64,000 nucleotides of DNA from Phallusia mammillata (Eukaryota): contig OZ281501.1 of assembly GCA_965637545.1 (NCBI GenBank), forward strand, positions 11,470,001-11,534,000, given 5' to 3'. This document shows, in pieces, positions 6,301-60,600 of the stretch (position 1 is the first letter of the stretch; the number at the start of each line of letters is the position of its first letter). A model generated the notes under the pieces. That model saw only the letters and a program-made list of their open reading frames with translations, ran no database searches and was not told the DNA's origin. The position numbers and the translations under genes were made by a program.

Positions 6301-8630
6301 CAAATTTACATTATTTGGAACAGCAAATAACAACAATTAGACTTCAGCATTTATGGGTCTGGTACTTTAGTGTTGACATTTGTAGCTTTTTGTAACAAAT
6401 AAAAATTAAAGTACATTGGAAGTCCTTTGCACTCATCAGTTGTGTTTCATTTAGATTGCTCCTGAGACCGCTGTGAAATTTATGGCGTATGAAAAAATGA
6501 AATATTTGATTGGTGCTCAGTCACAATCAGAAATTGGTGCTCCACAAAAGTTCATTGCAGGGTCAACTGCAGGAGTCATTTCGCAAACCACAATCTACCC
6601 TATGGAGGTGATGTTGGCAGTCTTTGGTTGTATGAGTGTTTTTTACAGCCAGATTTTAACCTTAAAATCATTTATTTGGACCCAAATAGAAACATGGGAC
6701 CAGTTAAATGGAGATATGCGACCGGTGCAATTTACATCTACTGTTTGGACTAACCATACTTTACTTACATGGGCATCACCTTAATTGTGGGCAATGACCA
6801 CACTTATGGCCAGACAGTAAACTTTTCTCTTTTTATGAAGGTCATAAAGACTCGACTCGCCTTGCGTAAAACTGGCCAATACAAGGGTATTTTTGACTGT
6901 GCTGTGAAAGTCTTTCGACATGAAGGGCCAGGAGCTTTTTTTAAAGGTTATATTCCTAATTGTCTTGGAATCATACCATATGCTGGTATTGATCTATGCA
7001 TTTATGAGGTAATATGAATTTTGTTGCGGCCTACCTGTGTAAATGAGGTTTACTGGTTTCCTGTATAACCTGCTGGATAAATAAAAACTGGATTACTTAT
7101 GGTCAACATTAAATTGTTTTAGATTTTACATTTTTTTTTCGACATTTGTGAAGTCACAATTAAATATACAAGTTCTCATTTTGCAGACATTAAAAAATTT
7201 TTGGATAAAAAACTACAGTGCAGAGAAAGACAGACCATCTGTACCTCTGTTGCTTGCTTGTGGTACAATTTCTAGTACATGCGGACAACTTTCTAGTTAT
7301 CCTCTTGCCCTGGTCAGAACGAAGATGCAAGCCCAAGGTAAATAATACAATAAATTATTACATGTCAGAAGAAAATTCAGTGTGAAAAACCACTAAATCT
7401 GTCGCTATGTTTTATTTGTTTTATCAAAACAAATGCATTTCGCTATAAAAAGCATCATCAGTGTCTAAAAACAAAATAAAAAGCGGGATAAGAGCAAAAA
7501 ATGCAAAAAACACACACCACCAGACCAACCGCAAAAAGCCTTTCCTCTGTCTTACAGGACTGCAAATGCAGACCGGCAGGTATGGCGTTGATAAAACACA
7601 CGAAAAAAGGCGAGGAAAAGATAAGGGCGCAAAACGAAAAAACAAACACGATTGCAACAACAAAGCGATTGCAGTTAACGAACTGCCGGAAGGACCATCG
7701 CTTGAACATTTATTGTGGCGCCGGTTAAAATTAGCCATTTGTTTTCACAAATATCCAATTTTTCTGTCCGCGGTTCCTCCACAAAAACCACATTATAACA
7801 GAGCGCAATATCCAACTTTTTTTGAAAAAGTTGGAAATGTTTATTGTGGTAGTGCTGAAGAAGGGCCGCGCGGTCACCCCCTACACTTAAGTCGGACGTC
7901 CGCCAAACAAACCGATGTGAATTCCATCGGGTCGAAAACTTCCTCGCCTTTTTTCGTGTGTTTTATCAACGCCATACCTGCCGGTCTGCATTTGCAGTCC
8001 TGAAAGACAGAGGAAAGGCTTTTTGCGGTTGGTCTGGTGGTGTGTGTTTTTTGCATTTTTTGCTCTTATCCCGCTTTTTATTTTGTTTTTAGACACTGAT
8101 GATGCTTTTTATAGCGAAATGCATTTGTTTTGATAAAACAAATAAAACATAGCGACAGATTTAGTGGTTTTTCACACTGAATTTTCTTCATCTGATTTTA
8201 ATGACCCTGAATCGTCGCGGTCGTTTTACTTGAAAGGAGATTTCAATAATAAGAAAAGAATTACTACGTTATTACATGTCATTCATTTTCTCGCGAAATG
8301 TTAACATGTATGTTTTTAGCATCACTGCCAGATTCTAAACATGAGAAAGTTAGTATGGTTTCATTGTTCCGTTCCATTGTGCAAAACGAGGGAGTGTTCG
8401 GGCTCTACAGAGGATTGGCACCAAACTTCATGAAGGTATTTTTTACACCACACAGCGAAAATACTATTGTAACTTGCTGGAAGTCACAAATTGCTTGAAA
8501 TAATTATTGAAACTAGATTTCATGGTTTTTACAGCTTAACAACTGTTTTGTGTTTCAGGTGGTACCAGCAGTGAGTATTAGTTATGTGGTTTATGAAAAC
8601 ATGCGAATGCAACTTGGTGTGTACAGATGA
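3322..8630 (+). CDS. SCaMC: Calcium-binding mitochondrial ATP-Mg/Pi carrier (SCaMC; SLC25A23/24/25 family), 11 exons, 473 aa
   Basis: Exons 3322-3486, 3871-3997, 4068-4155, 4694-4805, 5567-5725, 6058-6168, 6455-6607, 6841-7008, 7187-7337, 8320-8435, 8559-8630 give 1422 nt with consistent phases. Four EF-hands ([36 protein letters not shown]) and three carrier repeats (PLDRLK, PMEVIK, PLALVR). AATAAA at 9168. Confidence 0.95.
7368..8189. mobile_element. Foldback-type element with 250-bp near-perfect inverted arms in SCaMC intron 9
   Basis: 7368-7617 is the reverse complement of 7940-8189 (one mismatch seen). The 322-bp spacer has an internal 11-bp hairpin at 7811-7835. No clear TSD and no credible coding capacity. 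Confidence 0.8.
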
Positions 8631-9570
8631 TCAATCAACACTGCCAATTATATAGATCTGCCTCATAGTTGAATGGGTTCATTGCAATGCTTGCAAACTT
8701 TGTAGGAATAAGAGTTAACTGTGTTTATTTTGCTGTAACAATTCATCATCCCAGTAAGATCCTATGCAAGTGTTTTGCTGAAGTAATTTAACAAGGAAAA
8801 ACATTCATCTAATTTCAGCCCCATATTACTCTATATTATTTATTTCAAACTGTGTAGAACTTTACTTCTGTTTTGGATAGTACAAGTTTTTGATGTTTTG
8901 CTTGTGATAAGTGGTTTGATGTTTCACTTTCCATGTATGCTTTTTTAGAACCATTACTAGATACTAACCAATAAAACAATCACAATGTTAAAAACATGCA
9001 AAACATAAACTCCTGACAAAACTGAACATGCTGACCATGGTTTATGAATACATTTTCGATGTCTCTGCTACTTTGCTGACCCTGTTTAATGTCAACAGTT
9101 TAAAGTGTGCAAACAATTATGTATCGTTGCTGGTGACTTTTTGTTCAGCGTTCATTGATATTTTATGAATAAAATTTGTTTTTTATACTTGATACTGTTA
9201 GAATATACCAGCTGTTAGGTACAAATGAAACACACACTTTTTATTATTTTCAAACCGAATTTTTGTGTAAAATAATTTGTGATACAATCTGACATTAATC
9301 ACAAAAACATCAGCAGCATTAAAGCAGGCACAACAGTACCTAATAACCACCATATGAAAGTAAAGTTAACATTTAAAATCAGTTATAGCACCACAAATAA
9401 CATTTTGCACACAAACCAACAACACATCATCTATATTGCTAGATTATGAAAAGTAAACTTAGTGTAGTCAGCTACACAGCAGCAAAAATCTGCCTGGTTG
9501 TTGACACTGTGGCAGTCCACATGTTACAAGAAGCAAATTACAGTTCATGAAGAAATTAATATGATAAACA

Positions 9571-10563
9571 TCAATGTTGCATAAAATCCAGTTTGCAATA
9601 TTCCTTCAGCTTTTCAGGCAGTTGGAGTTGATCGATTAATTTCATCTGCACTTCACAATCTTGTTCCGCAAATTCATGTGGATAGTTTCGTGACAACCCT
9701 TGTCGAATTGAATGTTTACTTAAGGCTTTAAGACTTGCAGGACTTTCTTTAAAGGCTAGCACTTCATAATGTCGAAAAAGATACTCTTTTTCCATGAAAG
9801 GAACATACAGGCATTTATGCGTTTGATGAACCTTTCCTGGTATTTGTGTATTGCCTAACCGGTCAGACAATTCAAGCCTTCTTCCTCGCCATGTGCGACC
9901 CTGTTCCAATGAGCCCATAGTTCTACCAATGTATAAAGGTTCTAAGTATGAACAGTCCATTCCACCAATGACGGAGTTGTTTGGTACATTTCCTCCATGA
10001 CATGGGATCCATTGCAAATAGTCATGATTGGAGCCCACAAGAACTTCGTATTTTGACGCAGATCTAACTCCAGTTCCGTATGGCACAAGCAAACACCTGA
10101 TGAACATTTAAACACTTATGAGCTAGTTTTATCGAGCAAGACCTAACCATGCTCTATAGCTTTGCACAATTTGGGTAGTATTTAAACACTTTCAAAAAGT
10201 TGCATTGGACTTGAAAGTTGAAACACCCAGGGCTTTACCTGTTCTTGGACAATTTTTACTCTTTACCCACACGGTTGGTATAAATTAAACATATCCCCTA
10301 TAGGACTTTATATGATAACTTTAGCTTCATACACACTTTTCACTAGGTATTATAACTCCTGGAGTTAACTCATTCCGATTTTCAACAAGTCTTGTTCTTC
10401 CAATATATGTTGTTTCTTCTGTCAGTGTTTTTCCTCCAACCACAGCACCATCGGGAATATAACCATCTTCGCCTTCTTCCCAACTAATACTGCTGGTAGG
10501 CACAGTTGTCAGACCAGAAAATTGATCTGATTCTATCATCGTCCAACGACCACAGTGCAGCAT
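9571..10563 (-). CDS. Two DM9 (DUF3421) repeats plus C-terminal SOCS box, 2 exons, 250 aa
   Basis: Exons 10563-10337 and 10096-9571 (phase-2 GT-AG intron). DM9 motifs W...G.IP..AVVGG...YIGR...PG...KCLLVPYG..YEVL and WIPCHGGNVPNNSVIGG.D..LYIGR...PGKV..KCLYVPF..YEVL. SOCS-like SPASLKALSKHSIR...IDQLQLPEKLKEY. No signal peptide. Confidence 0.8.
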
Positions 10564-11926
10564 TTGCGCCAGTTGTTTCTTAGCGCAGGTAAGAAATCTG
10601 GATGTTTACAGTTACAGCATTTGTAGGGTGACCAGAAAAAAATCAGCCGTGTAACAGCGCACCACTTTTCAGAACAAACATACTACTAACATTACTAAGT
10701 ACCAGCTAATAGACTCTTGTTTTGTCCGCGACAACCGCGAGTGTCAACAAACCTCACGGAATGTTGTTATCCTATCAGCAGGTGCTCTGATTGGCTAAAA
10801 CTGCGGAACGCCCGCCATAAAATCATGATGACGTATGACTTTGCATCCGAAGTTCCGAACCCCGACATAAAAATTATCACGTTGTTTTTGACATAAACTT
10901 TGTCAATGAGGCCGCGTCAGTAATCTTTAATTGTACATACCCTATGATAGTTTAAAAGCGCAAAATGCCTGTGGCGCGTAGGTGATCATAGATAACCTTC
11001 TGTCGTTTACGGTATATGTTATTGATTTGCAAACACACACAAAAATGTAGCCTCATTATAGTCTGTTTTGTAATGACAAAATCAGTTTCAGTGGCTCGAA
11101 AATATAGCACAGTCTTCAGCCAGAAGGTACCAAAAATAAAAAAATAACTCACATCCAAAAACGCTCCCATTAGATAAAAGATGCTAGGTCTACTGAACTG
11201 ACAGATGGCTAAGGAACTAAATTTTTGCTATTATAGTTTTAAAGTTATAGGCTATTTATTATGTTACATAACCCCAACCCCATTAGCCCTAACCATTTTT
11301 TCTTAAATATTTATCATTGCTCTTTACGCCCCTTGCGGGTATTTAGTAAATTTTGTCTGGAGTAAGTTCTTGTGTGGTGGAGCTCATAGGCGCCGAGTTT
11401 TACAAAAATGCAAGGTGGCGGACGTCAAACATGACGTCACTAATGCGTACAACCACAAAAACTTAAAGCCATACAACTTCCCAGAGAATGCAACGTTCGT
11501 CAAAATCAGAAAAAAACGGTATGTTTGAAATAATATGTAGCTGGCAATGACAACACGTTGCTGCTGCTATATATCACCTTAGAAAACCATAAATTACAAC
11601 ACATTTGCATTTTGCTCAACAATGACCGAACATTCACTTCACTGACAGACAATTGTGTGTTTGACGTCATGAACAAGCCACTAACCACAACAAGTTGTAG
11701 TTTTAATTTAAGCCACATTTTGTGGCTGAATCGCCAGCACGCTTGTTAAAGGGCAAAGTTGTTGCTATTATTCTTCAGATTTTACGATATTTCGTACTAA
11801 ACCGCTATATACTAACCACAATTTCCACGGTGGCCGCCACCATTCTTTACAAACCCAAGGTGGCGGCGCCACTCCGCGTCTATGGAGCTACTAACACCAT
11901 TCCTCTCGGGACACCCAACACCAAAG

Positions 11927-27473: not shown

Positions 27474-28157
27474 ATGTCAACCGACGGAGACACCCAGCAT
27501 GCTGTTGCGATCAAACTTCCGACTTTCTGGTCAGCAGAACCACGTGTTTGGTTCCAACAAATTGAGGCACAATTTGCATTAAAACACATAGTTGCAGACC
27601 AAACAAAGTTTTATTATGTAGTGTCCGCACTTGATCAAGATACAGCAAAGCGTATAATCGATTTATTGGAAGATCCTCCAGCAGAAAACAAGTTCGCATC
27701 AATTAAACAAAGACTGCTGGATTATTTTGATTTATCAAATCAAGAAAGAGCAGCACGCCTGCTGAACATTGCACCTCTCGGTGACAGAAAACCTTCTGAA
27801 CTTATGGACGAAATGCTAGCCCTAATGGGAAAACACCAGTCTTGCTTTCTATTCCAACATTTGTTTTTACAACATATGCCGGAAGATATTCGTATTGTCC
27901 TCGTTCAAAAAGATTTGGAAAACCCTCGCGATTTGGCAAAACAGGCGGATAGGTTATGGCTTGCTCGGACGAGCAACACAGACTACACCATTGCCAAATT
28001 AAGAAAGCAGAGGCAAGCTAAATCTACAACACTTTTCAACAGCAACGACAGTAGTCAATATTGTTTTTACCACCGGCGTTTCAAACAAGATGCACGACAA
28101 TGTCGTCCACCATGTGCTGCACAACAGGGAAACGCCAAGGCCGGTTGTCCACAATGA
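27474..28157 (+). CDS. gag: Gypsy Gag, 227 aa, with CHCC-type motif
   Basis: [22 protein letters not shown]-terminus; C-x2-H-x9-C-x3-C ([18 protein letters not shown]). Confidence 0.93.
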
Positions 28158-31100
28158 ATGGGACAACCGGCAAATCACACAACTTATTTTTCGTGTGGGA
28201 TCGAGCCTCTGGTTGCAACTTTCTCGTGGACACTGGTGCTGAAATCAGTGTCTTTCCGCCTTCTGGCTATGAAAGGAGAATGAACCACAAGGGACAAAAT
28301 CTCACAGCAGCTAACGGCAGCAATATAACAACCTACGGTTCCAAGTTAATTTCTCTTGATATTCCTTCCGGCGAGTTTCAATGGAAGTTTGTGCTCGCCG
28401 ACGTATCAAGGCCACTACTTGGAGCAGATTTCCTTCGAGCGCACGGTTTACTTGTTGATGTTAAACGGCAATGTCTGGTGCATGCTCAGTCGTTAACTAG
28501 CATGACCATAGGCAAGACAAACCGAGCGGCACCTCGCCTAAACGCAATTAGCAACGCACAATCAAGTTATGCCAAACTTTTGGCAAAGTTTCCGGACATA
28601 ACAACGCCACATTTTTCTGCAGTAATGCCAAAACATGGTGTGGAACATCACATTCCCACAAGCGGCCTACCAGTGCACTCTCGGGCAAGACGACTTCCAC
28701 CCGAAAAACTAGCCATTGCAAAGGCAGAATTTAGTAAAATGATGGAGCTGGGAATAGTCCGCCGTTCATCCAGTCCATGGTCGTCTCCACTTCATATGGT
28801 TCCCAAAACATCAGGTGGATGGCGCCCCTGTGGCGATTACAGGCGCCTTAATGCAGCAACACAACCAGACCGTTACTCGATCCCACATATCCAGGATTTT
28901 ACAACACGACTGGCAGGGGCTAAGATTTTTTCTAAAATCGATCTGGTTCGAGGATATCACCAGGTACCCGTTGCGCCAGCAGACATTTCCAAAACGGCTG
29001 TCGTAACACCGTTTGGGCTTTTTGAGTTTCTGCGTATGCCCTTTGGACTTAAAAATGCAGCTCAAGCGTTTCAAAGAATGATGGATACAGTTTGTCAGTC
29101 TTTAAAATTTGTGTTTGTTTACCTTGATGACATATTGGTTGCAAGTAAGTCGGCTAACGAACATCGCAATCATCTTCAGCAGCTTTTTAAACAATTAGCT
29201 GACCATGAACTTGTCATTAATCTGGCCAAATGTAAGTTTGGATTGACGGAAATCGATTTTCTCGGCCATCGCGTGGATAGATTTGGTGCCAGACCCTTAC
29301 CTGACAAAGTCAAGGCAATTCAAAGCTTTCCCAAACCTACCACTATTAAAGGCCTACAAGAATTTGCTGGCATGATAAATTTTTATCACAGATTTCTTCC
29401 TGGTGCAGCGCAAATCATGATGCCATTGTATGAAGCACTTTCGGGCAAACCAAAACACCTGGTTTGGAACAACACAATGCTTGCAGCATTTACCAAGGCT
29501 AAAAAGGCACTTGCTGCAGCAACGCTACTTCACCACCCTATACCTCAGGCACAAACCGCCCTGACGGTCGACGCGTCACAGTCAGCTGTTGGTGCTGTGC
29601 TTGAGCAAAACATTGGAGGTTGCTGGAGGCCATTAGCATTTTTCAGCAGGCATCTCAGACCATCAGAAACAAAGTACAGCGCGTTCGACAGAGAGTTACT
29701 GGCTTTGCATTTGGCAATCCGCCATTTTCGATACTTTCTTGAAGGGCGCAGTTTTGCTGCTTTTACTGACCACAAACCGTTAACGTTTGCGTTTGCAAAA
29801 GTGTCTGATCCATGGTCAGCGCGCCAACAACGCCACCTTACAGCAATATCCGAATTCACCACTGATGTTCGACACATCCAAGGGAAACATAATCAAGTAG
29901 CTGACGCATTGTCCCGGATAACTGTCTCAAGTCTACAAAAGGTGATGTTGGATTTCGATTACAAAGCTATAGCGAATGCGCAACTTCATAAAGAAGTGCA
30001 ATCATATCGTACAGCAGTTACAAACCTAAAGCTTGAGGACATAACTATTGGCAACTCTGGTTTAACACTGTTGTGTGACACTTCCACTGGCACTCCGCGA
30101 CCGATCATACCGCTTTCGCGGCAAAAGAAAGTATTCGACATTATTCACTGTTTGTCACATCCGTCAATACGCACGACGCGCAAGCTAATAGCTTCAAAAT
30201 TTGTGTGGCACGGGCTCAAACAGCAAGTAGGATTATGGGTTAAACAGTGTACAGCTTGCCAGAAATCAAAGATCCACACACACGTTCGATCAACTCTGGT
30301 GGATTACTCATTACCTCGTTCCCGTTTTGAACATGTTAACATTGACATTGTTGGCCCTTTACCACCGTCACAGGGCAAAACATATCTGCTGACAATAGTA
30401 GATAGGTTTACAAGGTGGCCAGAAGCAGTTCCCATGGCGGATTCCTTAACTCTAACTTGTGCCAGAGCTTTCCTTTCGGTCTGGATTTCACGGTTTGGAA
30501 TTCCAGCGCACCTATCTTCTGATCGTGGTCCGCAGTTCACGTCCCAGTTATGGTCAACGATAAGCCAACTGCTTGGAATACAACTTCATCTCACCACCAG
30601 CTTTCACCCTCAATCAAACGGATTAGTTGAACGATTTCATCGGCACTTAAAGAGTGCTTTGATGGCTCGCCTTTCTGGACCAAACTGGATTGACGAATTA
30701 CCTTGGGTTATGTTAGGCATTCGAACTGCCCCCAAGGATGATTTACAGACATCTTCAGCAGAGCTCGTATATGGCTCTCCAATCGCAGTGCCAGGAGATT
30801 TCATCTGTCGTGATGAATCAGCTCCCTCACAAATTTTACCTGCTCTACGGGATGCAGTCGACAAACTTCTACCAACTCCTATGTCCAGACACGGCAATGT
30901 CAAAACAGCAATACCACCAAGTCTGGCGGCTAGTGACTATGTGTTCATTCGGAGAGACACACATCGTCCACCACTGACAAAGCCATATGACGGACCATTT
31001 AAAGTGGTAGCGCGATCCAACAAAACTTTTACATTAAACATGGGAGGTAAAGAGAAGGTGGTATCGATTGACCGCCTTAAACCTGCACATCTTGACCTGA

Positions 31101-31159
31101 GTCAGCCAGTTGTTGTTGAGCAACCTCCTCGCCGCGGCAGACCACCCAAAAAAACATAG
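28061..31159 (+). CDS. pol: Gypsy Pol (protease-RT-RNase H-integrase) in the -1 frame relative to gag
   Basis: FLVDTGA protease; YLDD RT; TVDAS...DRELLA RNase H; HHCC zinc finger; D,D35E integrase (IDIVG, SDRG, NGLVERF); PYDGPF module; C-terminal RRGRPP. Confidence 0.96.
28127..28171 (+). promoter_or_regulatory. Programmed -1 ribosomal frameshift signal
   Basis: Slippery heptamer G GGA AAC (28127-28133) in the gag frame, 6-nt spacer, then an 11-bp perfect stem 28140-28150 / 28161-28171 whose 10-nt loop holds the gag stop. Confidence 0.88.
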
Positions 31160-31472: not shown

Positions 31473-33134
31473 TTGGCTCCCACAGCCACCACTGCAAATG
31501 AAGGTCAAGAGCCTTTCGCTTTCGACCGAAATGTCGAGGTGGAAGCCCGCTTTAACCCTGGCCTGAAAAGACAGGAGATTTACGAAGTTTTACGGGCTAT
31601 CAGGTTCAATTTTCGAGCCGACTTGGACGGCATCATTCAACTGCCGAAGGGCCGAGTTACTTTTTATTGTAGCACGGAGGCGAAGGCCAAAGATCTAGCG
31701 GTCGCCCTGACCAACAGCCAAAGGGCGGATTACGCCACAGCCTACGCTGACAATCTAGTGAAGGTTGTCATGTCTCGCTGTCCCCCAGGGATTGATATGC
31801 GAGAAATCGTGGATTATTTGGACAGAACGTACGCTCCAGTCGAGCGTTCTTACAGAGTTAAAGACCCGATGAGCAAGTCTCTGGGGAAACGGGCTTTCTT
31901 TATGAAGAGATCCGTTCTCGCGGAAAACCCCATCCCAGAAAGCATCTTTCTAGGAAAGTGGTCAGTGTTAATGTTCTACACTGGCCAACCACGGGCTTGT
32001 GCCTATTGTCAGATCGTAGGCCATAAGAAGGAGGAATGCCCGTCGCTGCTGGAGCGTCAGGCACAGCAAACCCAAGAACAGCCTGATGTTCCAGCTGAAG
32101 CACCGGAGGAGATCGGAACAACATCCCCTCCCCAGACCTCGCGACAGGTGCTCCCTGGTCAGGTTGAGCGAGTCGGTGGTCTAGCCACGGAAACGGAGGA
32201 GATCGCAACAACATCCCCTCCCCAGACCTCGCGACAGGTGCTCCCTGGTCAGGTTGAGCGAGTCGGTGGTCTAGCCACGGAAACGGAGGAGATCGCAACA
32301 ACATCCCCTCCCCAGACCTCGCGACAGGTGCTCCCTGATCAGGTCGAGCGAGTCGGAGGTCAGAAGAAGGATACGGAGGAGATCGCAACAACATCCCCTC
32401 CCCAGACCTCGCGACAGGTGCTCCCTGATCAGGTCGAGCGAGTCGGAGGTCAGAAGAAGGATACGGAGGAGATCGCAACAACATCCCCTCCCCAGACCTC
32501 GCGACAGGTGCTCCCTGATCAGGTCGAGCGAGTCGGTGGTCAGAAGAAGAACAAGAAGGAGGAGGAGACAACAACGTCAGCCCCTTCATCGACCTCGCGA
32601 CAGGTGCTCCCTGAAAAGGTTGAGCGAGTCGGTGGTCCAACTACCAACCCCAGGAATCCGCGGTCGAAGCTCCCAAATATGGTTGAGCAAGCCGGTTCTC
32701 CTGGGCCCGCGCCAAGTGCGCCCACGACCTCAACACCCAGGATTACCCAAGGAAATGAGGAAGGGGTCGTCTCCCTTCCGGACACATCGCTTCCAGAGGA
32801 GATCATCACCCCACAGGAGGAAGGATACAAGATCGTCCGGAGGAGGAAACGACCAGCAGCGACACCGCCGAAGAACCGGACAAATTGCTGCCTTACAGCA
32901 TACGAAGGTAGAAACATGCGTTGTTTGTGCGGCACAATGCACATTAAGTGCAAATGTGGCACTTACGCCACAGAACAGAACTATAAAAGCCCATCGCAGT
33001 GTACTAATAAAAAGTGTAAAAGACTGCTAATACAATGCACTTGCGGAAATTGTTATAATTTAGCGGTCGATGAACGAATTCTCTGCTCATGCAAAGCTCG
33101 CATACCGTCAGATTTTAACGCCACCTTTTTTTAA
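31473..33134 (+). CDS. LINE ORF1 protein (zinc knuckle, 30-aa tandem repeats, Cys-rich C-terminus); begins with TTG
   Basis: 553-codon ORF with CAYCQIVGHKKEEC (CCHC), repeats at 32105-32640, and 13 Cys in the last ~80 aa. No in-frame ATG at its start. Confidence 0.8.
   Translation: MAPTATTANEGQEPFAFDRNVEVEARFNPGLKRQEIYEVLRAIRFNFRADLDGIIQLPKGRVTFYCSTEAKAKDLAVALTNSQRADYATAYADNLVKVVMSRCPPGIDMREIVDYLDRTYAPVERSYRVKDPMSKSLGKRAFFMKRSVLAENPIPESIFLGKWSVLMFYTGQPRACAYCQIVGHKKEECPSLLERQAQQTQEQPDVPAEAPEEIGTTSPPQTSRQVLPGQVERVGGLATETEEIATTSPPQTSRQVLPGQVERVGGLATETEEIATTSPPQTSRQVLPDQVERVGGQKKDTEEIATTSPPQTSRQVLPDQVERVGGQKKDTEEIATTSPPQTSRQVLPDQVERVGGQKKNKKEEETTTSAPSSTSRQVLPEKVERVGGPTTNPRNPRSKLPNMVEQAGSPGPAPSAPTTSTPRITQGNEEGVVSLPDTSLPEEIITPQEEGYKIVRRRKRPAATPPKNRTNCCLTAYEGRNMRCLCGTMHIKCKCGTYATEQNYKSPSQCTNKKCKRLLIQCTCGNCYNLAVDERILCSCKARIPSDFNATFF
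32105..32640 (+). repeat. 90-bp (30-aa) coding tandem repeat, 5 full copies plus 1 diverged
   Basis: Units start at 32105, 32195, 32285, 32375, 32465; unit EEIATTSPPQTSRQVLP(G/D)QVERVGG(LATET/QKKDT). Confidence 0.95.
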
Positions 33135-33180
33135 AAAAACTGTGTTACCTTATTGTTCCCCTTTTCATTCAAACGTTAAA

Positions 33181-36100
33181 ATGGCGCCGACCAGTTTTCT
33201 AAAAATCTGTACGCTGAATGTAAACGGCATAGGCCAGGCCTCCAAACGCCACGCCCTGTTCCGTCATCTGTCCTCTTTAAACTTTGACCTTTTTTGCCTC
33301 CAAGAAACCCACTCTACCCCCCAAACCGAATCCCTGTGGAAGTCCGAATGGACTTCCGGCCCAATCCTCTTAAACTCGGCACCGCACAAAGGCTCCGCCA
33401 GCGGCGGTGTCGCAGTTCTTCTAAACTCCTCTAGTATTTCCATTCTAAATTCTATTTCTGACTCCACCGGTCGTATTATTACGACCGACATATCTACCCG
33501 AACCCACACCATCCATATCGTAAACATTTATGCACCCTCCGGCAGTAAAAATCATCAAGCCCGCAACACCTTTTTCGACTCACTATACCCTTACATTAAT
33601 TCACCCCACCCTATCATCCTAACCGGCGACTTCAACTGTGTAGAAAACCCCTCTCTTGACAGATATCCCCCCAGCCATACCCACCCTCCTAATAAAACAC
33701 TACAGAACCTTCTAACAACCTTTCACCTCCAGGACTCTTTTCGGTTACTCCACCCCACCCTACGCCAATTCACCCGTCGAGCACCTAACACCCAATCCCG
33801 AATCGACCGCATTTACATATCTCCAGCCCTCATCCCAAAACAACACACCTTCCTCCCAACATCCCTTTCAGACCACGACCTTGTAATCCTTACCCTGAAC
33901 CTAGTCTCTGCCCCACCCAGGGGCAGAGGCACTTGGAAAAACAACGTCAACACCCTTCACGATCCTCACTTCCAAAAACACCTCCGACAACTTTACCCCG
34001 TATGGAAAACCCTTGCCCCATTCCACCCCAATCCCTTGGACTTCTGGTTGACCCTTAAAGTAAAATTCAAAAAACTTATCCAAACCCACTCAAAACGAAT
34101 TGCCCAAGAACAGCGTACCCATACCCACAACCTCCAGACCCAACTTAACACCCTTCGGCAAACCCTCAACGACGACCCTTCCTTGAAACACTACAAAACC
34201 TTCCTTGCTGTAAAAAATCCCTCGCAACTCTCCACCTCGACACCGCCCGATCCCATCTAATTAAGCTTCTGACCCCCATTTCAAACACATGGCAGACAAA
34301 ACCCTTTACTCACAACTCCTCCCCTCCAAACGACACCCCCCGATAACCGAACTGGAAAACGACCTTGGACTTCCCCTAACCACACCCAAGGAAATGCTTT
34401 CCCATACTCACCGTTTTTTCACAGACCTCTACTCGGACCAAAACAAACCTATCCCACCCCCGGACAATATCTTTTTGAAACAACCACTCAACCCCATACC
34501 GGAAGACCAAACCCAATCCCTATCCCAACCATTATCGAAAAGCGAAATAAAAAATACCATATCCCTTTTCCCAAACGGCAAAACCCCGGGTCCCGACGGT
34601 CTCAGTATCGAGTTTACTCGCTCTACTGGGACCTAATCGGGGCTGACCTCACCCAAGCCCTGGACTACGCGTACCTCAACGCCTATACCCCTTTAGATTT
34701 CAACCTTGGACACCTCACCCTAATCCACAAGAAGAACAACCCATCCCTCCTCACAAACTACCGCCCCATATCCCTCCTGAACGCCGACCTAAAAATACTA
34801 CAAAAAACCCTAAACCTCCGCATCAAACCCTTCCTTTCCCAGATAATTTCCCAAAACCAATTTGCACAACCCAATTCGACCACCTCCGACGCCACAACCC
34901 TCCTCCGCGACCTATTTCATGAAGCCACATCCCGTTCCTCTGATTCCTTTTTTGTTTCGCTCGACTTCCAAAAAGCCTTTGACTCCATTTCCTACACCTG
35001 GTTAAAATTACAACTTACCCGAAAACGTTTTCCCCCTACCTTTGTCAATTACATTCTTTCTCTGCAGACCACCGCTTACTCACACACCCTCCTCAATGGT
35101 TTTGCCACAACGGGCTTCCCGATCAGGAGAGGTGTCCGGCAAGGCGACCCGCTGAGCTTGACCCTCTTCCTGATTGCCATCGACCCATTACTCGCTGCCA
35201 TCCAAAACCACCCTTCGATATCACCTGTCCCAGCCCCTTGTCGAAACACACCAAAAGCAATCGCCTTTGCGGACGACGTCACCCTTGCGGTGGCCGGCTC
35301 CCATTCCCTAGAAACAGCCTTTCAATTAATATCCCGTTTCACCCTGATTACCGGCTTAGCCCTAAACCCCACCAAAACCCAGGCGATTGCTACCCTCTGC
35401 CCCCCAAACTCTCCAAACCTCCCCGATATCAACTGGAACCCGACTGTAATCACCCCTCTCAACATTCCCATCGGCCACCCCAAATCCATCACCGCAGCAT
35501 GGAGAAACGCCATCTGCTCCCTTAAAGAAACCTCCAAGTCCCTCAAACACCCTTTCCTCACCTACGACGCAAAGAGCATTTTAACCAAAACGCTGCTTCT
35601 CCCCAAACTCTCATACCTGGCACGAACCTACCCACTTCCACCCACGCAGCGAGAAACAGTCGATGGCATTGTGGTAGACTTCATTTCAGCCTACCCAAAT
35701 CCTCCCCTTCCAATAAAAACCCTATCCGCACGTCGTGACCTTGGTGGTTACGACGTCGCCAACATTCCCTTATACACAGACATTTTTTTTCTTGCACCCC
35801 TACGGAAATACCTCTTGCACAGAATTTTTGATACCCCGACAACACCCCAGCTTTCCCTACTCGAGTACCACGTTGGACACCCCATCTCCAGACTTTTTAA
35901 CCTCCGCACCAGAAACTACCTTCCCCACTCAAACAAACCTTCCCCCTTTTACCAGACCACTTTGTCGCTACTTGCAAAACTGAACCCAACACAATCCGAA
36001 CTGTTATCCCCAAAATCCAAACCACTCTACACTAGATTAGTCAACCCTGACCCCGACCCCACGAATCCCACCGATTGGTCCCTCATCCACCACCCAACCC

Positions 36101-36609
36101 CAACTACATTAAAAACCTTCAACTACCGACTGAAACAAAAAACCCTACCCCTACACTGTAAATTCACCATATTCTTTCTTGACAAGGACACAAACTGCTA
36201 CCTTTGCAACACCCATTTCGAAACCTACGACCACCTTTTCCACACCTGCCCCCAAATACAAAGCCTCCTCACCCTTGCAAAAAAAATCTTCACCAAAACA
36301 ACCGGAAATCCAACCACCTACTTTGACACCCCCTCCCACTATGAATTTATTAAACCCGACCACCCTTCAGCATCCGAACACACACTTATATCCCTACTGA
36401 ATTCAACCCTCTCCCATGCGATATGGAAAACCCGTAACAAAATAAAAGCCGAAACCAACTCCATCAGCCCCACACTTGACAAAGACCTAGCCCGATCCCT
36501 AATCCGCTCTTTACACTCTAAACTTTCTATCCAGCGGAACAGGCCAAACTCTATCCACTTGGAGGTCATGGCCAACGCCGTTAAAGCTATCAATTTGATA
36601 AAAATATAA
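33181..36609 (+). pseudogene. LINE ORF2 (APE endonuclease - RT - CCHC zinc finger), broken by three 1-nt deletions
   Basis: TLNVNG, LQETH, GDFN, SRIDRIY, SDH (APE); PGPDG, YRPISLLN, LDFQKAFD, RQGDPLS, FADD (RT); CYLC..HLFHTC. Frame changes near 34212-34217, 34273-34277 and 34613-34615. Confidence 0.92.
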
Positions 36610-46850: not shown

Positions 46851-47741
46851 TTATTTCCTTTTTAAATCACCTCTGAGACCCTTAGATCGATCATTTGATC
46901 CAACATATAGTTTTTCAAACAACTTTTTTGCGAATGCATGCAACAAAACTCTAACAAAAAGTTTCACAATATATTGCAACATACAACAGACACTTGCAGG
47001 TTCCTCATCAGACATGTCCTGAATTAAACTTTGAAAATTCATAAATTTTACATCACATATTATTTCCTCTGTAGCACTGTTAAAGTTAATGGCAGTTGGC
47101 TTTCCATTAGTCTGTCTTGTTATTTTTAAGTAAACATGTTGTAAAAAGAGAAGAAGTTCATCCGAAGGATATTTCAAACAGCCAGTAAATGTTTCCATTG
47201 TTTTGATTAGACTGCCATGTGGTTCTGACGCACAAATACACCCTATGGCTTCAGACAAGGCTGGGAATTTTGCCAATGTTTTCCGAATTAAAAACCCTCC
47301 AATATATTCAATGGTGTCGTTTTCAAATGCCTTTATTTGTCCATATGCGCACATTGTGACTGGTTCTTTGGTTTGATGAACAATTTTTGTGATGATATTT
47401 AAAAGACATTCTGCCGCAGAACCGTTGCTAAGATCAACATCAGAAAAATACTGTTTGGCGTTGAGGCACATTAAAGGAAACTTGCTTACAATTTCATCCT
47501 TGTTGTTGGTTTGTGCAAATGTTTTAAGCAAACTACCCACCAACTCCAAACCTGCGTTCGACAACTTCAATTTTAGATTCATTTCTGCAATGAATTGAGC
47601 TGGAAATGTAGATGTCTCAGTGCTCGATACACTTTGCTGTACAGAAAAGCCGGCGTCAGCTAGAACATCAATTTCACTGTCCATATTTTCGAACAATAGG
47701 TCCCTTATAACTTCCTCGGGTAAATTTAAGATTTCTTCCAT
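46851..47741 (-). CDS. Intronless 296-aa antisense ORF of the P element, resembling the P/THAP9 transposase C-terminal domain
   Basis: Intact ATG-to-stop ORF starting ~150 bp inside the right TIR. Motifs EYIGGFLIRK, GSLI...GCLKYPS, IVKLFVRVLLH and a basic terminus. The homology call is from recalled family patterns. Confidence 0.8.
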   Translation of the reverse strand: MEEILNLPEEVIRDLLFENMDSEIDVLADAGFSVQQSVSSTETSTFPAQFIAEMNLKLKLSNAGLELVGSLLKTFAQTNNKDEIVSKFPLMCLNAKQYFSDVDLSNGSAAECLLNIITKIVHQTKEPVTMCAYGQIKAFENDTIEYIGGFLIRKTLAKFPALSEAIGCICASEPHGSLIKTMETFTGCLKYPSDELLLFLQHVYLKITRQTNGKPTAINFNSATEEIICDVKFMNFQSLIQDMSDEEPASVCCMLQYIVKLFVRVLLHAFAKKLFEKLYVGSNDRSKGLRGDLKRK

Positions 47742-57600: not shown

Positions 57601-60600
57601 CGACGAACAGGGCGTAAAACACAGCCAACACAATGCACAAGTGAAGAAAAACTTGCGTTTGAGGAAGACTGCGCAAATTCCTAACAAAACGAAACTCATG
57701 TAGTCAATAATAGTTAAAAATCGGTACCATGAGCGCGTTAAAAGCAAGTTCCTCTGAGTAAGCGAGTTTCGTGTCTGCTATCAAGTATCACAGTTTTATT
57801 CCATACACGAACTTTTTTGGTATGGAAGTGTACTTTTAGCGGCGGCCAAAGTAAGAAAAAATGTAGCATCACGTACCTTGCGGAAAAGTGAACCATAATG
57901 GTCGCACACAGACCAAGCAAAGACAAAACGCAACCGGTAGTGCTGACAACAGACAAGGCAAAATCGGTTGGCACATACTTGTGGTTCTATATTGAACAAT
58001 CGAAATATTAAAAAACGCAAAATTTTGTCTATAGTTTTTTTTTTACTTACCACTAGCATGGCAAAGCTTGTGAGGTGATCTGACTTGCAAGTAGTTGTGC
58101 CTTCCAATAAACACATTCCTTTATTCGAGTATTCACCGGATATTGGGTCAATGTATACACACTTTAGTTCAGTGTGAAGATACTGCAACAAACATAGGTA
58201 TTTGTTCACAAGTTCTCTTTTTAAAATGTCTCGACCGTTTTGTATCAAATGTAAGCAACCACTTATGTCATGCTCGCTATCTAAAGTGAGAGCCTTCGTA
58301 TTTTACATACCTGTAGTCTTTTTTGGTAGTTTGTTAAAATTACCTTTGTTAGTTTCAGATCGCAAGAAAATAGGCTCTTAAATGAAAGTCATTTACAAAT
58401 TACACCCCAAATCGTTTACTTGACGACGGCGACAATTCAGTTGTGATATTAGGCCTAGTTGTTTGTGGGCGACTTACCTCAAGTTTTCCTGGTACTGCAC
58501 TTTTTTCACTCTTGTGATTCAATCTGGTAAAGTTAATGCTCACAGGTCTAGCCAATTTTTTAATGTTTTTGAGTTTTCCTACATCAGCAGACACAACCTA
58601 TGCAATAGCACAATTTAACACACAGGCACAGCGATTTTTCGGTTACATTATCTTACCCAGTCCGTGCCGCTTTCGTTTGCGTCCCTGCCTTTGAAAATGG
58701 AAACAACTGAGTTAGCTTCACCGCTGGTACGGTTCGCAATTTCATAAACTTCAGATGGTATAAATATGGCAGCAGGTTGAATGAATCCTTTCAAATTATT
58801 AGATGATGTGTTCAGCTGGTAAAACATGTCCAAAAAGCCTTGGATTGCGGAAACGACAGGTCGTGATACCTAAAAAGCAGAACAAATATGCCAACTTCTT
58901 TGTTATCTTCCGTATTTTTAGTTAAGAAAGTACACGCTATCAGCGCGGCTATGGGAATTAAACAGTGGTGGGATTCGAAATTTTTGTCAGCCGTATCTTG
59001 CACAAAAAATCCATTGACAGTAAGCAATAATGCTGACCGGTTCGCTGATCTCATAAAATGTCGTGAGACGTTTCTATGAAACCGTTGCGAACCGGCTGAA
59101 TCCCACCACTGGTATTTAAATAAGATTTTTACTACAGCAGAGCAACTTTTTACTACTGTAGCCTAAAAACAGCGCAACAGGGCAGCTCCAATCACAGATA
59201 TAGGTTGTTGCTGCTCAAACTTTGTTCAAACAAAAAATTCCCAATTGAACAAAGATCAGAAATCCACACAACATTTTCAGTTTACTGTGTAGCGTTTGTA
59301 CCAATGCCCCGGGAACAATCGCGTCTGTCCCTAATTTGCTTGCAGTTTTACCGCCGCTTAATTGCTATTATCTTTAACTCCCTTTCTTTCACTGTTGTGC
59401 GGTAAGTCACGTCCCTTCTGTGAGTTTTATTTCACCTGACGGTGACTGTAAACCATAAACTATATTTGTCGAATAGTTGTGATATTTTACAGAGAATACT
59501 CATAAAATAGTTTGGTTTGCTGAGAATATTTAGAACCATGCATTATGTACCTATACTGTAGCCTTGATTTTTCGCTAAAATCCAAGACATGTCGGGGAAA
59601 TTTCGGACGTCTAGTAAACTTACATCAGCTACCAAAGGTAAGCTTTACTAGTTATTTTTTTAACAGGTCTATAATTTGTTTACATGCCTTGTCCCAGATC
59701 ATTTTTTTTTCATTATTATCTATAATTTGTAACATCGTAGAATCACTTAATACATACTTTGATCTCGACCAGTGCGTAACTAGTATAGTTTAGATTCGGT
59801 TTGAAAACTTTTTAAGTACGACTGAAAACCTTTGAACTTTTCAACTTGTTAAAGTAGTTATGAACTGTTACAACTGGCCATAATGTTAAATGCAAACTCT
59901 GCTGCGATACAAATGCGGTGTGCTGGGGTTTAACAAGATAAGCTGTATTTTATTTGGAAATTAAAGTGAAGACTGTTCCAATTTCTGTGTAATTAAACGT
60001 GGGCATATAATGTCTGTTGAATGCACTTTGACGATGTTCTACAACATTTTCATGTTTTCGTAGTGCATGTTATGTTTGACTACGAACATTTTCGTAAGTG
60101 ACAAGTTTGACCGAAAATTGTAAAAAATCGCTATTAATTGCTTCTTTCATCTGGTAACCCTGGGTCGAACCGTGTTTGATCGTACCTGGATACATGATGT
60201 TAATCTTGTTTTGTGTTTGTGAAATGCACGTGCTTACAATTATAATATAAATGAAACACCTTTCCAGAAATCCTAATGTTGCGATGATTTTGCTTACATA
60301 AGTAAATTAATACCGAAAAAACTTACGACAACAGCCACGTTCTCGCTTTCGATGGTTGTGATGTCTGTGTTGTTGCCTAAAGTTAGGTGTGAAGCAATAG
60401 ACTGCAATGACTCAATCAAACCCGGTTGTCCACTGCTGTCGTTGTTTTTGATGTTGGCCGTAGAAACTGAGCTTAGTGTGTGAACGAGATTGCTCAAAAT
60501 TGAAGTAGAAATCTAAAAAGTTAATGGCAAAGTTGGTAATGTTATTTCAGTAATGGTGAAGATATTGTCTTTTAGTATCAATTATTTTTGCGAAAACCAT

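Follow-up and report, generated by a model that had tools for sequence, protein, structure and literature searches.

What might a protein do that joins the fold of a mannose lectin to the adaptor box of a ubiquitin ligase? The question is raised by a gene of the ascidian Phallusia mammillata, found on the minus strand at positions 9571-10563 of a 64,000-nucleotide stretch of contig OZ281501.1 (assembly GCA_965637545.1, positions 11,470,001 to 11,534,000; hereafter the window). Two coding exons specify a 250-residue protein in which a pair of DM9 repeats is followed by a C-terminal SOCS box, and we call the gene and its relatives DM9-SOCS. Taken together, the domains, residue patterns and relatives described below suggest that the protein is probably a substrate receptor of an Elongin B/C-cullin ligase. 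Whether it would, in that role, recognize a mannose-type glycan seems about evenly balanced, and as the best single explanation we tentatively favor a glycan-sensing receptor of the Cul5 class of cullin-RING ligases (CRL5; Elongin B/C-Cul5-Rbx2), at somewhat less than an even chance.

The gene is real and expressed. Two minus-strand open reading frames (ORFs), at 10327-10563 (from an ATG at 10563) and 9571-10107, are joined into a single frame by a GT..AG intron running from 10336 to 10097, and transcript contigs from four public runs in four studies cover both exons and skip exactly 10097-10336, which bears out the limits given to the gene by the first-pass annotation, made from the letters alone. 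The intron is retained in one low-depth contig. Being assemblies, the contigs show presence and splicing and say nothing of level or tissue; they fall entirely within the window, their ends place the mRNA between about 10802 and 9280-9365, and no further upstream exon is seen in them. Exon 1 is defined by its ORF, a Pfam DM9 match of 39.9 bits, the contig splice joint and its match to a P. mammillata database protein (UniRef A0A6F9DIY2 / CAB3262865.1; P0001 in our set), to which the exon-2 query is 99% identical. When the printed sequences are compared, the window protein differs from P0001 only at residue 212 (codon at about 9688-9690), which is Arg in the window and Gln in the database entry. 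Other allelic differences among the window, the transcript contigs and the database protein include those at 10429 (T>C), 10600 (G>T) and 10620 (T>C), and we regard them all as ordinary polymorphism in a highly heterozygous ascidian. A tblastn search for a paralogue within the window returned nothing besides the gene and its own internal repeat.

The same evidence bears on whether the locus could be a prediction artefact or a decaying pseudogene, with the two ORFs there by chance or the fusion without function. All that speaks for such a reading is the marginal Pfam SOCS score of the single Phallusia sequence. It is countered by the spliced transcripts, by an intact frame nearly identical to the database protein, by an alignment of orthologues, those of Ciona and Clavelina among them, in which 17 columns are invariant and 31 nearly so, and by the breadth of the family at 50% identity. 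We have therefore rejected it as vanishingly improbable.

The first-pass annotation had described a SOCS-box-like tail containing the strings SPASLKALSKHSIR and IDQLQLPEKLKEY, and both are present in the translation. Against a gathering cut-off of 23.5 bits, Pfam SOCS_box (PF07525) reaches 25.6 bits with exon 2 and, when the tail is scanned by itself, 29.1 bits (E 1.2e-6), with the full model covered (1-39 of 39), so that the Pfam scan proposed in that annotation finds both DM9 and SOCS_box above their cut-offs. Because the single-sequence score lies so near the threshold, the tail was tested at the level of the family. Twenty aligned relatives give the tail consensus SPxSLxxLCRxxI...IDxLPLPxxLKxFC, which reads as a BC box followed by a Cul5 box of the LP-phi-P type. 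When a profile of these 20 tails was compared with all PDB sequences, the top 14 matches were all SOCS boxes, including those of ASB8 (E 8.8e-7), ASB9, SOCS4, ASB7, SOCS2, SOCS1, SPSB3 and SOCS3, and each match fell in the SOCS-box region near the C terminus of its chain. SOCS_box scores among the relatives reach 36.5 bits, and most of those scanned exceed the cut-off. BC boxes follow the consensus [S/T/P]-L-x3-[C/S/A]-x3-[L/I/V], and the Phallusia letters, S197-L198-KAL-S202-KHS-I206, fit it. An AlphaFold model of the tail alone is helical, with a predicted local distance difference test score (pLDDT) of 73, and the models show three to four helices. Foldseek ranked the SOCS boxes of ASB8 and ASB7 first for the tail model, at template-modeling scores normalized by query (TMq) of 0.50-0.54 that were not significant (E>1), and a Foldseek search with the whole model matched its DM9 part only and returned no SOCS-box chain. 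The SOCS assignment consequently rests on sequence profiles.

Several features of the Phallusia tail weigh against its being a fully competent Cul5 adaptor. Its SOCS_box score is only just above the cut-off, BC-box position 202 is Ser in place of the Cys found in most relatives, and the linker between the BC and Cul5 boxes exceeds that of compact SOCS boxes by about 10 residues. In addition, the first Pro of the Cul5 box is replaced, giving LQLP instead of LPLP in both P0001 and its close relative P0002. The LP-phi-P element is required for Cul5 binding, and SOCS1, whose Cul5 box is imperfect, shows no detectable Cul5 binding (PMC4812663); with SOCS1 as precedent, LQLP raises the possibility of weak Cul5 binding in this lineage. 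These observations also lend themselves to another explanation, in which the protein would be a cytosolic DM9 pattern-recognition or signaling protein whose SOCS box binds Elongin B/C for its own stability or localization, or as a competitive sink, while the degenerate LQLP box would not assemble a productive Cul5 ligase. Oikopleura-type relatives, which keep the BC-box half only, would fit this explanation, and an oyster DM9 protein that serves as an intracellular pattern-recognition receptor offers a precedent for signaling by such a protein inside the cell (PMC12379375). However, a textbook LPLP Cul5 box is found in 20 of the 37 family members scanned, some others having LPIP, and the remainder of the Phallusia Cul5 box (P236, L239, Y242 and C243) is conserved in the orthologue alignment. 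That the entire box has been kept from sponges to tunicates speaks for the assembly of a ligase, and we consider a purely signaling role improbable.

The recognition half of the protein can be compared directly with a known lectin. Pfam DM9 (PF11901) scores 73.1 bits (E 2.3e-20) on exon 2, and the full-length AlphaFold model, with a pLDDT of 79 overall and about 90 over the DM9 part, matches the oyster lectin CGL1/CgDM9CP-1 (5mh3/5id8) in Foldseek at E 2e-10, a TM score of 0.89 by target and 24-25% identity. A phmmer search with the Phallusia protein also finds the CGL1 chains, at E 7e-6. Mannose is bound by CGL1 in two sites related by pseudo-symmetry: site A is formed by Asp22, Lys43 and Glu59 with His52, Phe126 and the backbone of Ala127, and the weaker site B by Lys114, Glu130, Tyr123, Phe55 and the backbone of Ala56, without an Asp (PMC4932603). 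In CgDM9CP-1, either D22A or K43A alone abolishes binding of mannose and of pathogen-associated molecular patterns (PMC5712788). Using these site definitions, we mapped the Phallusia residues through HMMER alignment to CGL1 chains 5id8/5mh2/5mh3 together with an alignment of the two internal repeats. The side-chain contacts of site A are all lost, with D22, K43, H52 and E59 replaced by T46, V70, L79 and V86, whereas those of site B are intact, with K114, Y123, E130, F55 and A56 corresponding to K164, Y173, E180, Y82 and G83. Moreover, D123 occupies the repeat-symmetry equivalent of CGL1 D22, so that the putative site B holds the full contact set that CGL1 has only in its strong site. The first-pass annotation had noted that repeat 2 keeps GG.D and PGK while repeat 1 has T and V at those places; the residues are indeed GGMD and PGK against GGKT and PGV, and its picture of sugar contacts kept in one repeat and lost in the other is sharpened by the mapping onto sites A and B.

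Conservation follows the same division. Across 10 aligned sequences of the orthologue group (48-76% identity), K164, Y173 and E180 never vary, and D123 and G83 hardly do. Since repeat 1 folds without its site residues, we infer that retention in repeat 2 reflects ligand binding rather than structural constraint. Immediately before K164 lies a feature not seen in CGL1: some 25 residues with a G-[RK]-T-W-[RQ]-G motif are inserted between the IGRT and PGK strands of repeat 2. This insertion is present in 24 of 24 aligned family members, where CGL1 has about 4 residues in the HMMER alignment, and most matches to plain DM9 proteins stop aligning at profile position ~130, that is, at the insertion.

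This insertion brings in the question of whether a CRL5-type receptor of this kind need read a glycan at all. Its DM9 domain could instead read a protein degron or some other non-glycan ligand through the surface formed by and around the GxTWxG loop, with the fold inherited from lectins serving as a mere scaffold. One of the two ancestral sugar sites has been destroyed, and a conserved insertion in every SOCS-linked DM9, with no counterpart in plain DM9 lectins, suggests a new specificity; placed beside the pocket, it could offer a surface for binding proteins or close the pocket off. Most non-ascidian members, sponge-like ones included, and paralogous ones either lack D123 or do not align there, and Lys and Glu belong to the generic signature of DM9 repeats, so their conservation need not mean sugar binding. 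Precedent from proteins outside the family points the same way: oyster CgDM9CP-6 binds to another protein, 14-3-3 epsilon (PMC12379375), and the characterized SOCS-box receptors reviewed in PMC4812663 all bind proteins. Against a non-glycan ligand, K164, Y173 and E180 persist across the clade, and ascidian orthologues preserve all four of D/K/Y/E, even though repeat 1 shows that the fold can do without them, and the site B pocket appears complete and conserved. Furthermore, the characterized DM9 proteins in the literature cited here bind mannose or microbial glycans, one of them inside the cell. We regard a non-glycan ligand as a serious but rather unlikely alternative to the glycan-sensing receptor.

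To place the protein among its relatives, we used an exhaustive profile search of 1.84 billion representatives, which gave 1634 DM9-type matches, and a SOCS tail was looked for in the best 150 of these (clusters at 50% identity). At least 36 of the 150 clusters carry one, and 32 span the BC box through the Cul5 box. Ascidian members come from Phallusia, Ciona intestinalis (two paralogues, LOC100184299 and LOC104265812), C. savignyi, Clavelina lepadiformis (also two paralogues) and Styela clava, and the larvacean Oikopleura dioica has a member with a degenerate tail, reduced to the BC box. Outside the tunicates, the family occurs in the homoscleromorph sponges Oscarella lobularis and O. pearsei. 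Many further members lie on ENA, Logan and NCBI contigs, often encoded by one ORF; some carry an additional DM9 pair at the N terminus, and neighboring copies occur in places. ESM Atlas feature searches with P0001 and P0029 gave no usable match.

ENA contig L004:599-3963 holds two adjacent DM9-SOCS genes (388 and 320 residues) on opposite strands, which points to local duplication of the family in that organism. A divergent subgroup (P0143, P0060, P0141, P0159, P0123, P0152, P0145 and P0116; 315-404 residues, Asn/Lys-rich) has the DM9 pair followed by a mid-protein, BC-box-rich SOCS-like segment (about residues 190-265), and ends in a C-terminal extension that can reach about 150 residues.

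In a maximum-likelihood tree of 86 DM9 pairs, the SOCS-bearing rows all fall on one side of a branch with Shimodaira-Hasegawa-like approximate likelihood ratio test (SH-aLRT) support of 82-87, and 40 plain DM9 proteins fall on the other; this support is moderate and the alignment short. The SOCS label clusters on the tree beyond what shuffling produces (0 of 500 shuffles). Fourteen rows inside the SOCS clade were labeled as lacking the box: several are fragments, two have degenerate Oikopleura-type tails, four were mislabeled and are in fact SOCS-positive, and two (P0051 and P0088) are unexplained. The raw figure of 12 changes of the label on the tree is thus an overcount owing to fragments and mislabeled rows. 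Taken together, the tree and the shared insertion lead us to favor a single origin of the DM9-SOCS fusion.

The compartment in which such a receptor would work can be judged from hydropathy. The first-pass annotation had reported no signal peptide, and Kyte-Doolittle hydropathy, used in place of a dedicated predictor, likewise finds no signal-peptide-like or transmembrane-like stretch; the highest 19-residue mean is 0.82, as is the highest 8-residue mean near the N terminus. The absence of both agrees with the compartment that a SOCS-box function requires. A DM9 pair, a true SOCS box, no signal peptide and expression together make the role of a CRL-type receptor the natural reading. We therefore propose, as a model, that the protein would be soluble, cytosolic or nuclear, and would serve as the receptor of an Elongin B/C-cullin-RING ligase, most likely with Cul5-Rbx2. 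The SOCS box would dock Elongin C through its BC-box helix (L198), and the Cul5 box would contact the cullin. The DM9 domain would be the recognition module, with one complete CGL1-type pocket (D123, K164, Y173 and E180, with Y82/G83) flanked by the Trp-containing family loop, the symmetric pocket of repeat 1 being presumably dead, and a substrate would be selected through the intact pocket and the adjacent loop. The favored ligand would be a terminal mannose-type glycan that has come to lie in the cytosol; retro-translocated glycoproteins, ruptured endolysosomes and invading microbes are examples of possible carriers, and the bound carrier would then be ubiquitinated.

How far this resembles systems already described depends on which half of the protein is compared. 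The tail and the overall layout are those of the ASB, SPSB and SOCS receptors of CRL5, with the recognition domain first and, at the C terminus, a SOCS box of about 40 residues whose BC box reads SLxxLCRxxI in the family consensus and whose Cul5 box reads LPLPxxLKxF/Y. The partner, however, is a DM9 pair, in contrast to the SH2, ankyrin, SPRY, WD40, LRR and GTPase partners described in PMC4812663, and ascidian orthologues carry a 10-40-residue insertion between the BC and Cul5 boxes; the Ser for Cys and LQLP for LPLP of Phallusia are further departures. With CGL1 (PDB 5ID8, 5IDB, 5MH0-3) the protein shares the two-repeat DM9 fold, the Lys, Glu and Tyr of site B with an aromatic and a backbone partner from the other repeat, and the lack of a signal peptide. 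It differs in the replacement of every hydrogen-bonding residue of site A (T46/V70/V86), in the gain of D123 at site B, in the 25-residue insertion before K164 and in the appended SOCS box.

The closest functional parallel lies with the sugar-recognizing F-box proteins of Skp1-Cul1-F-box (SCF) ligases, namely Fbs1/FBXO2, Fbs2/FBXO6, Fbs3/FBXO27 and the plant F-box-Nictaba proteins (PMC6389600). The proposed logic would be the same, a nucleocytoplasmic lectin-type domain joined to a cullin-adaptor box so that glycans exposed to the cytosol act as a signal for ubiquitination (PMC6389600). The adaptors differ, F-box/Skp1-Cul1 there and SOCS/EloBC-Cul5 in DM9-SOCS, as do the lectin folds, FBA/SBD or Nictaba there and DM9 here. 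A Pfam search of the Phallusia protein at E<=10 found only DM9 and SOCS_box and neither an F-box nor an FBA domain, and the likeness is best read as functional analogy without homology. The first-pass annotation had called the protein a CRL5 counterpart of the F-box lectins that tags misfolded proteins, damaged lysosomes or microbes. Its receptor half is supported by Pfam, the PDB profile matches and the BC box, whereas its specific targets are drawn by analogy and must be considered speculative for Phallusia. In its fullest form, with DM9-SOCS as an old animal family and a Cul5-based counterpart of SCF-Fbs that ubiquitinates glycoconjugates exposed by endoplasmic-reticulum-associated degradation, endolysosomal rupture or intracellular microbes, we think the proposal possible though doubtful.

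A third comparison is suggested by a database label, since the Ciona orthologue carries the automatic NCBI name 'natterin-4-like'. Natterin and natterin-like proteins combine a DM9 or jacalin lectin with an aerolysin-type pore-forming domain, and DM9-SOCS proteins likewise place an N-terminal DM9 lectin module before a C-terminal effector module; here, however, that effector module is a SOCS box. No ETX_MTX2/aerolysin domain is found in Pfam, so we rejected a toxin reading, and the name is misleading. Such labels qualify the novelty that the first-pass annotation had seen in the pairing. Public databases already show the arrangement, in entries from Ciona, Clavelina, Styela and Oscarella that bear automatic names of the kind 'SOCS box domain-containing protein' and 'natterin-4-like'. 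In the literature library searched, no paper was found that links DM9 or natterin with a SOCS box, the papers returned for that pairing being unrelated, and none that names these genes. A review of sugar-recognizing ubiquitin ligases mentions neither SOCS nor CUL5 (PMC6389600), and a Cul5 review lists no lectin partner (PMC4812663). The combination, a SOCS-box receptor with a lectin-fold recognition module, is thus uncharacterized rather than undiscovered.

A conserved DM9-SOCS family would add such a module to the Cul5 system, where the sugar-reading cullin-RING receptors covered in PMC6389600 are F-box proteins on Cul1 only. If the glycan-sensing model is true, the family would provide the first SOCS-box E3 receptor of lectin type, and glycan-directed ubiquitination would have been invented twice, independently, in animals. 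The family offers a candidate for that process in invertebrate chordates and sponges that can be probed by mutation at D123, K164 and E180, at L198, and by exchange of LQLP and LPLP. Ciona and Phallusia lend themselves to embryological work, which makes the prediction directly testable, and the domain assignment corrects misleading automatic names ('natterin-4-like', 'uncharacterized'). Coordinates of the gene and its parts are collected in Table 1.

Table 1. Parts of the Phallusia mammillata DM9-SOCS gene and protein, in window coordinates
Feature	Position	Strand	Description
5' untranslated region	10564..10802	-	Transcript start ~10753-10802; contigs of four runs end at 10723-10802
Coding exon 1	10337..10563	-	Residues 1-75 and two bases of codon 76; disordered N terminus, first part of DM9 repeat 1
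Intron	10097..10336	-	240 nucleotides, GT..AG, phase 2; joint 'skips 240, CT..AC, cut +4' in 4/4 runs
Coding exon 2	9571..10096	-	Last base of codon 76, residues 77-250, stop; rest of repeat 1, repeat 2, SOCS box
3' untranslated region	9280..9570	-	Transcript contig ends between 9280 and 9365
DM9 repeat 1	10036..10488	-	Residues 26-96, split by intron; degenerate site A: T46, V70, L79, V86
DM9 repeat 2	9754..10017	-	Residues 103-190; D123, K164, Y173, E180 intact, completed by Y82/G83 of repeat 1
Family-specific loop insertion	9844..9918	-	Residues 136-160 of repeat 2; G-[RK]-T-W-[RQ]-G motif; directly before K164
SOCS box	9592..9744	-	Residues 194-244; Pfam PF07525; tail profile; model helices 198-213, 223-231, 237-248
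BC box, P195-I206	9706..9741	-	S197-L198-x3-S202-x3-I206; P195 and L198 invariant in family
Cul5 box, I230-C243	9595..9636	-	L233-Q234-L235-P236...L239...Y242-C243; LPLP in most relatives

The rest of the window, which is AT-rich eukaryotic DNA, holds a close neighbor, mobile elements and other ORFs. On the same strand, an exon of a neighboring transcript at 8557-9187 starts only about 100-180 nucleotides downstream of where the DM9-SOCS mRNA ends, and its contigs (0.85-2.5 kb) continue by splicing below 8557; this tight spacing raises the question of whether the two genes form an operon of the ascidian type. At 27474-31156 on the plus strand, at the start of a GC-rich stretch located at 28-36 kb, lies the coding region of a Gypsy-type long terminal repeat (LTR) retrotransposon, with a gag-like ORF carrying DUF7041 (82 bits) and a 1032-residue pol with protease-like, RVT_1, RNase H and integrase domains. 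The 553-residue ORF at 31473-33131 had no Pfam match. A non-LTR element of the long interspersed nuclear element type follows in pieces at 33070-36606 (plus strand), with an APE-type endonuclease ORF (Exo_endo_phos, 67.6 bits) and a separate ORF holding the C-terminal part of a reverse transcriptase and zf-RVT; GC content in this region reaches 52%, with a strongly negative GC skew of -0.2 to -0.5. A 296-residue minus-strand ORF at 46854-47741 gives a weak, sub-threshold match to the C-terminal domain of P-element transposase (20.6 bits against 22.6). Finally, the 150-residue ORF at 57799-58248, also on the minus strand, carries a GPS (G-protein-coupled receptor proteolysis site) motif at 25.8 bits against a cut-off of 22.5 and is probably an exon of an adhesion G-protein-coupled receptor or polycystin-type gene.

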